Below, piece after piece: positions 5,118 through 47,010 of a stretch of 64,000 bases of DNA. Source of the DNA: Pelomyxa schiedti (taxonomy: Eukaryota; Protista; Evosea); the NCBI GenBank assembly GCA_020536535.1, contig JAHLWZ010000813.1, positions 1 to 64,000 of the forward strand, read 5' to 3'. The translations under genes were made by a program, and so were the position numbers. The notes beneath the pieces are model-generated. The model was not told the origin of the DNA and searched no databases. It saw only the letters and a program-made list of their open reading frames with translations. Positions within the stretch are counted from its first letter, which is position 1. Every line of letters begins with the position of its first letter.

Positions 5118-7889
5118 ATGTCGTGGTTATTTGGCGCGGTTTTTCTGGTGGTGCTTGCACTGGCAGAGGCAGCAACTCACGGGCTTATGGGAGGTGCTAT
5201 GGTAGTGAAGGAGGAGGTTTCGTTGGCACTGAAAGAGGGACGACCCGTCGTGGTATTGGAATCTACGATCGTGGCTCACGGTGAGCAATTAAATACATAT
5301 CATTAAGTACTGGTAAATATACCACGTACGAAACCAACATGACATGGAACAAAAAGGGATGCCATTCCCACAGAACTTGGAGACAGCAATTGCTGTTGAA
5401 AATGTTGTCAGAGAATATGGTGCCATTCCTGCCACTATTGCAGTTCTTGATGGAGTTGTGCACATTGGTTAGCTCTCCCAAAATCAGTTGCATCTAGTTT
5501 GTGACACATATAACTTTGTGTTTTTACTTTCAGGGCTGAGTGTCTCTGAACTTGAATCTCTGGCAAGAAAGGGAAGTTCCGTTAATAAGGCATCCAGGCG
5601 GGATCTTGCGGTTGCAGTAGGTGGGAATCTGGATGCGGCGACAACAGTTTCTGCCACATCTCTACTGGCTAGTAGGGCTGGAATTGATGTATTTGTTACT
5701 GGTGGAATTGGAGGTGTTCACCGTGGTTTTGAATCTAGTATGTAGATAGTACCTCCATGCCATACCAATCACATTTTTAAATTGTTCTCCAAAAAAAATA
5801 GCAATGGATGTGAGTGCTGATCTCACTGAGCTTGGGAGGACCAAAATTTGTGTGGTATCAGCTGGTGTCAAGTCCATTTTAGATATTCCTCGAACCCTGG
5901 AATATTTGGTATTACTATCTGATTATCAATTTCTGACTGCAGGAAGGAAACGCAAGGTGTTACTGTTATAGGATACAGAACTGGTATAAAATCCAGTTTC
6001 CTTGATCTCACTAAGTTTTCCTAGATACTTTTCCTGCCTTCTTCACACCTAAGAGTAACAGCGTCGTATGTGTAATCTCGTACCTGTCTTCTGTGTAAGG
6101 ATTTCCCTAAGGTCCCGCTTCGGCTAGACACACCTGAGCAATGTGCCAATGTGATATGTATGTAAACTCAAAAAGCACCTACTACAATAATTATCTCATT
6201 ATATCCAGTGGCAAACGAGCTTCTGGATCTTCAGAGTGGTATTCTGGTGGCAGTCCCAATCCCCGAAGAAGAAGCCCCAGAAGGAGATATGGTTGAAAGT
6301 GTGATTGAAGCCGTACTGAATGAGGCCAAGGAACAAGGGATTACAGGTCGTGATATCACTCCCTTCGTTCTCAAGAGAGTGAATGAGCTTTCTGGCGGCT
6401 TATCTCTCAAGAGCAGTATCCCAAATTGAGAAGCCCCTCCTTTGTTTTCCCTTAACATACCTTAAATATTGCTCTTGTTAAGAACAACGCAAAAATTGGA
6501 GCACAGATAGCTGTGGCTCTTTCACAGAGAAGAGCTTTAAAAACAAATGTGGAACCACGGCACCCGATTGTCTTATTTGGTGGAAGCATTATTGATATAT
6601 CTTCACGGACATTGTCATCGTTTAACACAAAAACTAAATCAAACTCTGGAGATGTTTCACTCCACAATGGAGGGGTCGGCAGAAATATTGCAGAAGCTCT
6701 TACCCGATTGGGTGAAGGTACTTGGCTTCATCTCTACTTCATGTGTAAAAAAGGTTATAAGATCCCTTACTGGTTTCTGCCGTGGGTCAGGATGAATTTG
6801 GCGATTTAATACTGTCACAGTTAAAGGCCCTGAAAATGTCCACAAGGGGGATACTAGTAGGATCACAGGACCACCCAGTGCATACCGCGGTTTTTAATAA
6901 CATGATTGAGGGAGCCACTGGCGACTCCATTGCTATTGCTGAGACATCCATATTTGATGTAATTTCTTCAGATTATGTATGTTGACAAGAGTGCCATTGA
7001 CTTCAGTTCAATCCTTTAAGATTTCACTTTTCACCGACGATATTACCAGCTCACAAATTGTAATTCTTGATGGCAACGTACCTGTTGAAGCTATTGGGCG
7101 TGTTTGTGATATAGCACACTCCGCACAAGTGCCTGGTAATTACGGCTTCTCTCATGTATCTAGCGACTCATTCATCCAGTATGGTTTGAGCCCGCAACTG
7201 CGGAAAAGTCAAAAAAAGCATTGCACCCAAGGATCAATTCCAACTGCATTACTTATATTTCGCCAAACCGAGAGGAACTTATTTCTTTGGCTTCAGCAAG
7301 TGGAATTCCAGTGGGCGAGGCCCCAGAAGAGCCTGCATCTCAAAGTAAGTCAACAACAATCCCGTTGTGCTGAAACTAACTGTTGTGTACAGTACTGTTC
7401 TATAAAGAGCTTGGTGAGAAACTTTTCCTTCCCTTCCCGAGTCTCCGGGGTGTCCTGGTTAAATTAGGAAAGCTCGGAGCACTCACAATAACTCCTACAA
7501 CGTCATTGTGTAACTCCGCAAACGGTAAGTGCCTATCCACTACATTTAGCACGGAACACTTTGCTGCCCATGAAGTAGGCACACTTGTCGACGCCACTGG
7601 CGCAGGTGTGCTCTCAAACCAAAACATAAAAACCTGTTGCTTTACACAAACCGAATTGGCCGTTATACACCGCACCTCGCTTTACCTCAACCGAACTAAA
7701 CACCACTAAGGAGACTGCATGGCAGCAGCCATTATTGCACACATGCTGCCTCACCTGCGACACAATACAAACACACCTTACAACCTGCTTCCAGCAGCAA
7801 TGCAGGCCGGCCTGAGGGCTGCCAAACTATCAGTGGAGTCAGAGTACCCTGTATCACACCTCCTAAACAGTGAGGTGTTGAGGGACTAG
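5118..7889 (+). CDS. psuG-psuK: Bifunctional pseudouridine-5'-phosphate glycosidase (PsuG/IndA) and PfkB-family pseudouridine kinase; multi-exon; hydrophobic N-terminus
   Basis: [13 protein letters not shown]|[34 protein letters not shown] and GRDITPFVL are PsuG motifs; [11 protein letters not shown] and VDATGAG|D are PfkB motifs. Stop TAG at 7887-7889. Confidence 0.93.
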
Positions 7890-43500: not shown

Positions 43501-44661
43501 TTTGGCCAAGGAATTTCTGCTGATGATGGCGGTGTCATATGAGAAAGGGAATGAACAATCAAATCATAATGTTCATTATTACTCAGAGTAAAGGCTTTGT
43601 GAAGAATTAGGAAATGCAACTTCAAAAATGAGGCGTACTACGAAAACATTTAGGGCCGTCTGGATCGGTTCCCGATTGTTTTCGCCAGTTTACTGATGCT
43701 GTTGAAAGAGACGATGAACTTACAGTGGAAGATGCAGATGTACGCAAAGGGGCAGGATCAGAAGAGGCCCGTAATTGAGTTTCTGAAGGGGTGTCATTTA
43801 CATCAGTTTCACCAGAGGAACGATCAGTTGAAGTTAGAAGGAGGTCATGCCGATCAACATTGGCTGATGTGCTGGTTGTGGTGCAAGTGGAATTAGGTTG
43901 TATGGCTTTATCTGTGCTATGATGCAGTTCACCAACATCTCTGGATTCCTTCAAACAAAAGGATTCCATAATTTCACTTGCTGCTGTCACCAAAGTACCA
44001 TTTCCTCCAACGCCTATCCCACCACTAGACCCAGCACTCCCATAAGTGTTACTGCTTATTGAACACAGTGATGTGATGTGTGAGGTGACCCATTGTTCAG
44101 TATCACCGTTTTTACATGAACTTGCCATCATTCTGTTGACGACGATAAGCAACGAACCCATAATTTTGTGAGAGGGAAAAGGTAATTGAACAGGAATAAA
44201 TTTAGTGTGGTGTTCATACTCTGGAAGCACGTGGGTCACATAATTCCACTCTGGCATACTCGCGGATTCGTCGGTGGCGATGACCACGTTAGCAGTTCTA
44301 AACAGTACTATGAATTTGGACCGAGGCATCAACCCATTGTACTGCATCAAAACAAACAGTTTGTCATCCGACTCGGCACTAAGGTAAGACAGTTAGCCCA
44401 GAACCCACAAACCATAAGCCACATACACTACACTGTACTGTGACAGGCGCCCAAACCATGGAACTACAAAAGGGCGCGGCTTCAACCACATCTTTGTTGT
44501 TTCAATGAAAATCAGTCGAAGGGATTACCGGAAAGGTTCAGATGAGGGAAGTGGTTCTTTGGCACAACAACGAGAATGACGTTGACTTTGGTACCTTGAA
44601 TCTTGAATTCCAATAGGTAGAGGGAGGACTCCGTAGTGGTGGGCGAACCAGACAACCACAT
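40555..44661 (-). CDS. Kelch-repeat, SAM and tyrosine-kinase-type protein kinase
   Basis: Kelch ([34 protein letters not shown]); SAM ([33 protein letters not shown]|ELG); kinase [31 protein letters not shown]. Start uncertain. Confidence 0.88.
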
Positions 44662-44716
44662 CGAAATTCCTGTCACAGAAAGCAGATCCAAACGCGAAAA
44701 AGAAACAACAAACAGA

Positions 44717-45596
44717 ATGCAGCAGCAGTGCGGGGCGAGACGTAGTGGATGGGACGTACGTGATGAAGAGGACGTGAAGAGATCTCGTGTGATACGGATG
44801 CTGGGGCTGGCGGTGGGAGAGGCGATGAGCGGGGACATGGTGGACAAGCACGGGGCGGTGGTGGCCACAACGTCGGGCCGCGTCCTGTCCCTGGGTCGCA
44901 ATCGCCCCGTGAATCGCGTAGGAGGTAGCTGCAATGTTACGGTTTTTTGTTTTTGTTTTGTTTTGTTTTTGTTTTGCTTTTTTTCTTCACAGCTAGTTAT
45001 GCTTCTTGGTTTCATTTTTATGAAGTGAAGTACTTTGTAACGTGTCGTAGTATATGCTATTGAATAACTGACAGTGTGTAGGGTGTAATTGCCTGAGCAC
45101 ACACGCTGAAGTGGACGCGCTGTGGCGTCTTCAAGGGGCTTATGGCCAACAACAACAGCAAGAAGAATCGCAAGGTGATTGACCTGTACGTGGTGCATGT
45201 TGGTGGCTGCGGGGAAAGGGGTGGACTTAACAATGGAGCAACATACCAGCGGTGTGCTATGTCAAGACCGTGCTATGGATGCGTAAGGTGTGCTGAAAAA
45301 TGCCACCTTGTTTTTATTATTATTTATGACTGTACAGGTGGCTGAGTGCCTATGGAGTAAAGCGTGTATTCTACAGCGTTGATATAGGCACAGACACGCA
45401 GCACACGCTTTATCACAATGGCGGCACTGTTTCATTGTCATGGCACATGGAAAAGACTAGCACACTCCGGCAGATGGTGGTATGTGGTTCTATCCCCCAA
45501 CCCGTCACTAAACATCACTAGACCTACAAGACAGCCATCCAGAGAGACCTGGGCATCACCCTTTCCCCCAAAAAAACCCCCAAACACCATAACTGA
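44717..45596 (+). CDS. Zn-dependent cytidine/dCMP deaminase-fold protein split by a +1 frame change
   Basis: Frame 0: DKHGAVV..GRVLSLGRN|..STHAEVDAL, stop at 45180-45182. Frame +1: DLYVVHV..MSRPCYGCV|RWLSAYGVKRVFYS..|TYKTAIQRDLG, stop at 45594-45596. Confidence 0.85.
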
Positions 45597-45730: not shown

Positions 45731-47010
45731 TTACTCGGAGTCACTGTCTTTTGTGCTTCGTTTCTCCTTCTTTCTTCTCGTCCTGGCTTTGGGAGTTGTG
45801 CAATCGGCACCCACTCCAACTTTTGGGCAGTCGTTGCGCAGAACACATCCAGAGCATGTGGGGTTTCTGGAATGGCAAGTCTTCCTCCCATGTTGAACTA
45901 GAAGCATGTGGAATTTAAACTGCGTAGGTTTTCTGATTAGGCCTATGAAGAATTCAGTTCTTATCTACAAACCTTTATGCCATCAGGAACTATATTTTGC
46001 ATTTCTCTCTGGGTCTGCTCTCGGGACAAGTTCCATGGAACAAGTCCTAGCCGCCTTGATACTCTAGAAAGTTTAGAAGAAGCCGTTTATATAAGGAGAG
46101 GAGATGTTCCTGTGCACATGTGTGTCAACGGGAAAAACATCTCTATTCATTGAAAACATCAAAACGCATGCTGCTGTCTTGGGCCCAACTCCTTTCATCC
46201 CTGTCAAAACTGATGTAGCTTCTTCACTGGACATTTGGCAAAGAGGACGAAGTGTTGGAGGTTCCCCAAATTGCCTTCTAGCTTCTGCTATGGCCTCTTG
46301 TATTGATGCAGCTTTTCTCGTAGCTAGACCACCACATCGAATTGCAGCTTCTATTTCCCCTTGTGGTGCTTTAGCAACAGCATCCCAGGTCGGGAAGAGC
46401 TTTCTTAGAGACGCGAACTGCACAGTAAGGATAGGTTAAACGCAAATGGGAACCAAAGGTATCCCCCAGCCTAAAAGAAAAAACTAAAAAAAAAAAAAGC
46501 TCACAGCGCGGCTGCTATTGACGTCAGTTGTATTCTGTGAGAGTATAGTCAAGACCAAACTATCCAAAGGATCAACATTCTCCTGTTGTTGCAGGGAAAT
46601 TAAAACAAAAAAAACCCAAACAAACAAAATATCCAACAAAAGAAAAACCACACTTCCCCACACAACGTCGCTCCCCTGCTCCCACCCCTACTCCTACCCC
46701 TGCACACCGCACTTCGTTGTGGCTCCCCGTACTTCGTGCATAGAGCACCGCACGCCTCTTCTATGTCCACCCGACTTGTCCGCCCTGTAGCTGTCGCTGT
46801 CCCTCGCACCGGTGCTGCTCCCCTTCCTCGGCGGGGCCGACTGCACCGCTCCTCCTCGCCTGAGCTCCCTCCTGTGCTGGACTCGCCCTCCGAGTAGGAC
46901 GACTCGGATGACGCCGATGACGACGAAGAGCGTGAGCGTGAACTTGACGAACTGCTTCCTCGGTTGTGCGGTGACACCGAGGTGGTGCGGCCCCTGGGTC
47001 GTCGTCGCAT
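45731..47010 (-). CDS. Endonuclease III-like HhH-GPD DNA glycosylase with 4Fe-4S motif
   Basis: DPLDSLVLTILSQNTTDVNS, IRCGGLATRKA, MKGVGPKTAACVLMF, FPVDTHVHR and CHSRNPTCSGCVLRNDC (C-x6-C-x2-C-x5-C). Confidence 0.9.

Follow-up and report, generated by a model that had tools for sequence, protein, structure and literature searches.

Ty1 and the cellular genes ABP140 and EST3 of yeast shift the ribosome by +1 at sequences such as CUU-AGG-C and CUU-AGU-U, and CUU-N is an established slip site of this type. A second type of site lies at a stop codon, which is a natural pause for the ribosome: antizyme (OAZ) shifts at UGA and prfB at CUU-UGA-C, and Euplotes, where shifting is a genome-wide feature, uses AAA-UAR. 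To our knowledge, few cellular genes outside the ciliates depend on a +1 shift (antizyme, prfB, and yeast ABP140 and EST3), and none is known to us in Amoebozoa or in a deaminase; literature searches likewise found no +1 frameshift case in Amoebozoa or in a deaminase. Here, we describe a deaminase gene of the anaerobic amoeba Pelomyxa schiedti whose two halves lie in different reading frames. The break is real in the DNA and is common to both copies of the gene in the genome, both halves are selected, and both are homologous to one uninterrupted viral domain. The best explanation, to which we assign a probability of roughly 0.58, appears to be a conserved programmed +1 ribosomal frameshift that was kept in two paralogues.

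The window, i.e., the whole 64,000-nucleotide stretch of DNA analyzed (contig JAHLWZ010000813.1, positions 1 to 64,000), carries this gene on its plus strand as four exons between positions 44717 and 45596, separated by three GT..AG introns of 157, 50, and 42 nt. Exon 1 (44717–44924) begins with the ATG at 44717–44719 and encodes helix 1 and strands 1–2 of the deaminase fold; its last base opens a Gly codon, and it is 60% identical to its counterpart in the paralogue. Intron 1 (44925–45081) is T-rich with 32% GC. Exon 2 (45082–45287) is 206 nt long, one base over an in-frame length, and it is here that the reading frame breaks. In frame 0 the exon reads ..CLSTHAEVDALWRL, including the HAE zinc/catalytic motif at 45102–45110, and past HAE it continues ..VDALWRLQGAYGQQQQQEESQGD to a TGA at 45180–45182. 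The +1 frame has no stop from 45096 onward, and its translation, ..DLYVVHV..SRPCYGCVR, contains DLYVVHV (45181–45201), the core strand beta3, and PCYGC (45268–45282), the second zinc motif; this frame then splices in phase to WLSAYGVKRVFYS.. and runs to the stop at 45594–45596. HAE and PCxxC are thus present in the expected order, in the window copy as in the paralogue, but in different frames. Intron 2 (45288–45337, 50 nt, 32% GC) is followed by exon 3 (45338–45479), which begins with WLSAYGVKRVFYS.. and carries strand 4 onwards; intron 3 occupies 45480–45521, and exon 4 (45522–45596) encodes TYKTAIQR.., a match to the motif T-Y-x-T-A-[IM]-Q-R common to the paralogue, and ends in TGA. On re-reading, the coordinates, translations, and the frame-0/+1 split of HAE and PCxxC given in the first-pass annotation, which had been made from the sequence alone, were all correct. 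Two neighboring features were recorded. An antisense ORF of 228 amino acids (44512–45198, minus strand) lies over exon 1, intron 1, and part of exon 2, and its translation is non-coding-like; just downstream of the deaminase gene, also on the minus strand, is an endonuclease III-like exon of the Nth/HhH-GPD type (46073–46423).

Searching the assembly with exon pieces revealed one further copy in the P. schiedti genome, on the minus strand of contig C151 at about 5200–6300, the annotated protein of which is KAH3766362.1 ("hypothetical protein Pelo_1747 [Pelomyxa schiedti]"). All three introns of the window copy recur in the paralogue at the same positions and in the same phases, the position of intron 3 being seen in the annotated protein. 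Exon 2 of the paralogue is 239 nt long and leaves the same remainder of 2 modulo 3, with HAEVDALWRL in frame 0 and DLFVVRV..SKPCSNCVR in frame +1, and frame 0 of either copy ends at a TGA overlapping the codon for the Asp of D-L-[YF]-V-V. Between the two copies, dN is 0.38 and dS 1.71 in the upstream half, dN is 0.58 with dS saturated in the downstream half, and the overall dN/dS is ~0.2. The 107–108 downstream codons are free of stops in both copies, for which the neutral chance was estimated at roughly 3e-5. These values suggest that both halves have been under purifying selection since the duplication and that the copies are old. Because the downstream halves are both stop-free and selected, they were presumably kept as protein in the other frame since before the duplication; the only alternative is two recent independent lesions. 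The break is carried by two sequences only, both of one species. Among the matches to the paralogue's protein in the collection searched, none is an annotated protein for the window copy, which the published annotation apparently overlooked.

Relatives outside P. schiedti were reached only indirectly. Word-indexed protein searches with exon 1 and with the paralogue's protein as queries returned only the paralogue's own protein, and a profile search with exon 1 over 1.84 billion proteins returned the paralogue and one spurious bacterial repeat protein. Viral contigs searched with a single amoeba-deaminase protein query gave no match, nor did the frame-+1 piece in a profile search of the PDB. 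Chlorovirus genes were reached with a degenerate DNA pattern for HAE-[VIM]-DALW, and the relatives recovered amount to 24 chlorovirus-type proteins with PF00383 and another 56 viral loci, all of them uninterrupted ORFs. The frameshifted amoeba products score 74–79 bits when compared with a family HMM of 69 uninterrupted viral homologues. Each half is also recognized alone, the frame-0 half at 40.2 bits (window) and 45.5 bits (paralogue) and the frame-+1 half at 27.4 and 27.0 bits, respectively, whereas shuffled sequences score at most 6 bits. Language-model look-alikes of the amoeba deaminase are Nucleocytoviricota PF00383 clusters (score 0.93). The structural model of a chlorovirus homologue (pLDDT 88.6) matches cytidine and dCMP deaminase structures at TM 0.7–0.76 and places a strand at residues 70–77 (..AVIVRV) between the helices of HAE and PCxxC; the amoeba D-L-[YF]-V-V-[HR]-V aligns with this viral beta3 strand. 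AlphaFold prediction of the amoeba protein without an alignment gave a pLDDT of 32 and was unusable. Pfam found no match to single exon pieces, and a PF00383 scan of the amoeba's own genome picked up neither copy; the paralogue's annotated product, from which beta3 is missing, scores 23.2 bits (E=6.7e-5) against PF00383, for which the gathering cut-off is 25. Taken from sequence likeness and the viral model, the gene product is predicted to be a small zinc deaminase with a cytidine/dCMP-deaminase fold, belonging to the PF00383 superfamily, and WRL in frame 0 and D-L-[YF]-V-V-[HR]-V in frame +1 both appear to be coding, as the viral relatives indicate.

The amoeba copies contain the same single domain as the small CDA-like deaminases of chloroviruses and giant viruses (e.g., the "cytidine and deoxycytidylate deaminase" of Paramecium bursaria Chlorella virus). 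The order of elements is common to both: a KHG strand, S-x-HAE-x-DALW[KR][IL], a loop, a hydrophobic beta3 ending in R/H-V, a short excursion, S[RK]PCxxC, and GV[KR]-x-[IV]-x-YS. The viral genes are uninterrupted and intronless and encode 117–195 amino acids, whereas the amoeba copies have three introns and the +1 break; they are also extended at the N and C termini, have a longer loop ahead of beta3, and carry an insert of 14–16 amino acids between beta3 and PCxxC. The paralogue with the same break and the uninterrupted viral homologues strongly support the first-pass view that an otherwise intact, selected gene needs a +1 change of frame. The break and a YUU-NAA-like codon pair, whose recurrence at the same position it had set down as a point to check, are found in the C151 paralogue; the fungal or invertebrate homologues that it described as often annotated to end after HAE were not found, the only relatives recovered being the uninterrupted viral ones. 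Detectable relatives are confined to genes of chloroviruses, other giant viruses, and possibly phages (IMG/VR viral contigs), so that one may ask whether viruses and Archamoebae have exchanged genes. The same genome also contains two canonical PF00383 genes (C1112:7710-7946 and C807:114926-115060), one FCY1-like and the other CDA-like, with an ordinary intron between HAE and PCxxC; the in-match TGA of one of them sits in that intron, and there is no frameshift there.

An extra base in the GGGG or CTTC run could have been introduced by sequencing or assembly, and the origin of the reference lends this idea some substance: it is an Illumina-based SPAdes assembly of amplified single cells, made from whole-genome-amplified DNA, and Nanopore reads were also used (PMC8887013). 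However, separate assemblies of three runs from one sample gave contigs (k-mer depth 42–49) that are identical to the window across the frame break, and a 393-nt contig from the later single-cell RNA library of a second sample matches 44989–45338 with zero differences and zero gaps, all four runs being from the same study as the reference and probably from the same culture. Both the GGGG run, whose G count had been set down as a point to check, and the CTTC run therefore stand as assembled. In addition, the paralogue has the same offset despite a different local sequence, and assembly error is effectively excluded as the cause of the break. The RNA-library contigs are shallow (depth 3.5–5.2), and introns 1 and 2 are unspliced in the one that extends into them, which retains intron 2 whole and intron 1 partly; it is thus not mature mRNA, though it is co-linear with the genome at the break. 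A start at the T-rich tract of intron 1, as seen in one RNA-library contig, points to internal priming or carried-over DNA; this contig could equally derive from an antisense transcript. One run yielded a second contig set covering window positions 44519–44934, with eight substitutions and a 6-nt deletion upstream of the gene (44549–44647) and three non-synonymous differences (G44753T, C44773G, and T44775G) in the poorly conserved N-terminal tail. It is probably a second allele or nucleus type.

A break that is real in the DNA might mean that both copies are young pseudogenes, each with its own one-base error in the same variable loop, or with one error that spread by short gene conversion. 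Nothing in the run data examined shows translation, the window copy is seemingly unannotated, and the 21-nt block that is identical between the copies next to one candidate shift site could be a conversion tract. Even so, we consider decay unlikely. Two lesions would have to be of the same sign, fall in the same ~10% of the coding sequence, and be the sole defect in each copy, in which the start codon, the catalytic motifs, every splice site, and a frame of roughly 200 codons are otherwise intact. The loops are unalignable and differ by 33 nt in length, so they were not recently converted, and the base between CTT and AAG is C in one copy and A in the other, a poor fit to a copied insertion. 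A dN/dS of ~0.2 and stop-free downstream halves are not what an old, shared, and unexpressed lesion would leave. That both copies share the break and yet stay under purifying selection is what makes a programmed +1 frameshift the best explanation.

Repair of the frame in the RNA is the other route to a full protein, and the NCBI model of the paralogue embodies one version of it: ..KQG is joined to QQHRS.. via a 52-nt GT..AG intron that removes the core beta3 strand (YDLFVVRVAAVAEDEG). The window counterpart is a 64-nt stretch from the GT at 45175 to the AG at 45238, and its excision would give a protein without DLYVVHV. Such an intron restores the frame in both copies and leaves a spacing between HAE and PCxxC that is near that of the chlorovirus proteins, because of which its products score best against a narrow chlorovirus-only HMM; the match of the paralogue's annotated product to PF00383, cited above, also speaks for it. 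Nonetheless, we judge it very improbable that this intron is real. The stretch is conserved between the copies as protein in frame +1 (identity at the three codon positions of 13/7/2 of 16, p=0.0017; an amino-acid score reached by 0/20000 shuffles), it encodes the core strand that, in the folded viral homologue, lies between the zinc-binding helices, its GC content is 55–56% (55% in the window) versus 32–39% in real introns, and neither the position nor the phase of its ends is the same in the two copies. With the broad family HMM, the frameshift products outscore both intron products in both copies, the product of this intron falling 3–6 bits short, and in the window copy removal of the stretch costs 5–6 bits as well as beta3; short beta3 peptides were too short to score against the chlorovirus HMM. 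The annotated intron of the paralogue looks like a gene-finder detour round the frame break. A frame restored by a very short or non-canonical intron within the loop (GC..AG at 45138–45174, 37 nt, in the window; GT..AG, 40 nt, in the paralogue), or by nucleotide-deletion editing, is less improbable than this but still doubtful, about as much so as decay of both copies. We know of no deletion or insertion editing of nuclear mRNA. Suitable GC/GT..AG pairs do exist, and the genome is very intron-rich, with 7.4 introns per gene (PMC8887013). The window contains no GT at all between 45132 and 45174, so no GT-AG intron in it can join the WRL and beta3 blocks; only GC..AG pairs of 25–37 nt spare both conserved blocks, and these have no matching positions in the paralogue, unlike the three real introns. 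They are also shorter than the six inferred introns (42–157 nt), have exon-like GC, and lack the CTRAY-like branch motifs of real introns; GC-AG introns make up only 1.6% of annotated introns, and the RNA-library contig that is unspliced at introns 1 and 2 keeps the whole stretch. Two further GT..AG introns were rejected, one at 45111–45135 (25 nt), which the first-pass annotation had named as an example of what would refute a frameshift and against which the arguments come from the sequence, and one from GT 45122 (GTGGCG) to AG 45158 (37 nt; 70 nt in the paralogue). Both would delete the virus-conserved W-R-L (W[KR][IL]), and their 5' ends are identical between the copies at 10/10 positions versus ~4/10 for real introns.

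We infer that the frame is corrected on the ribosome, and likewise where. Under a programmed +1 frameshift, the full product of ~209 amino acids would require a single +1 move in exon 2, between 45131 and 45181. Ribosomes that do not shift would stop at the UGA at 45180–45182 and release a 102-amino-acid fragment with HAE, which, without beta3 and the two cysteine zinc ligands, would presumably be inactive. The presence of the same arrangement in a diverged paralogue argues that the shift is old and tolerated, and hence programmed. Two candidate sites lie at the borders of this interval. Site A (45129–45135) is CTT CAA G in the window and CTT AAA G in the paralogue; here, the Leu-tRNA would slip in the P site from CUU to UUC (UUA in the paralogue), yielding ..WRL-KGLMANN... 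The heptamer CUU-NAA-G is conserved, the skipped base varying (C/A) while the +1 codon AAG is kept, and it follows 21 identical nucleotides (45111–45131), seven unchanged codons for V D A L W R L (p=0.015 gene-wide), the last three of which correspond to the viral W[KR][IL]. A 6-bp hairpin is possible in this block, but it folds no better than shuffled sequences. The exact 21-mer, GTGGACGCGCTGTGGCGTCTT, was found once in metagenome contigs (JAEEGI010014064.1, 8715–8735), in an unrelated bacterial gene also encoding EVDALWRL, which is about the chance expectation for a collection of that size.

Site B (45177–45183) is GAT TGA C in the window and GTA TGA T in the paralogue, and the +1 move would occur at the slowly decoded stop (GAU-UGA-C or GUA-UGA-U), yielding ..ESQGD-DLYVV... 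The UGA stands at the same codon overlap in both copies. The nine nucleotides before it differ at frame-0 codon positions 3, 3, 2, and 3, and the Q and G just before the UGA are kept through synonymous changes; many viral homologues have a matching [RKQ]-G two residues ahead of beta3. The codon in the P site is GAU in the window and GUA in the paralogue, and +1 re-pairing is impossible. No RNA fold around or downstream of either candidate site was better than those of shuffled sequence, and no Rfam frameshift element matched. The family HMM does not separate sites A and B (74.5 versus 75.7 bits in the window, 79.4 versus 78.8 in the paralogue). Nor did codon usage discriminate when the likelihood of the loop was compared between frame 0 and frame +1. 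The shift had originally been placed at CUU-CAA-G; conservation of CUU-NAA-G after 21 identical nucleotides favors that placement, but the UGA at 45180–45182 is at least as good a candidate, and CAA and AAA are not rare, being as frequent as CAG and AAG in the long open frames of the window by a rough codon count. On the present sequences, we would give the two sites roughly equal weight. Two other modes of expression were considered. A split enzyme starting at an internal ATG (45142) was rejected, as the +1 frame of the paralogue has no ATG, and a ribosome hop from CUU to CUU or from CUU to CUG was set aside, as the paralogue has no matching landing codon and the loop would be lost.

Should the shift occur at site B, it would be a stop-dependent +1 shift (GAU/GUA-UGA) with no tRNA re-pairing and no known stimulator, kept through a duplication and a long divergence, and thus a new kind of shift site. 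We put this forward only tentatively, as we do the idea that the cell uses such a shift to set or sense how much of a potentially mutagenic or nucleotide-pool enzyme is present, perhaps with the aid of the conserved upstream 21-nt element or of a nascent-peptide element. With two diverged paralogues and uninterrupted viral relatives as a natural control, the locus would offer a compact system of ~80 nt for eukaryotic ribosome shifting, in which one could also ask whether shifting adjusts the dosage of a deaminase acting on nucleotides or nucleic acids. The paralogue was annotated via a false intron and the window copy seemingly not at all, suggesting that gene finders hide such cases.

Compared with the described systems, site A resembles the Ty1/ABP140/EST3 type in having CUU in the P site, a +1 codon (UUC or UUA) that a wobble-reading Leu-tRNA could re-pair with, and a retained AAG. 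It differs from that type in its frame-0 A-site codons, which are not rare in the window. Site B is like antizyme, prfB, and Euplotes sites in that the junction of either copy coincides with a frame-0 UGA, the next base being C in the window. The AAA-UAA/UAG of Euplotes is absent at the gene, whose own terminator is a normal UGA, and, relative to antizyme, site B has a P-site codon that is not conserved, no downstream pseudoknot, and no known 5' element. A further likeness lies in the architecture, as a functional part of the protein is in frame +1 and the arrangement has been kept over a long divergence. What the gene has in common with +1 frameshift genes in general is that both frames are conserved and selected around a single break shared by two paralogues.
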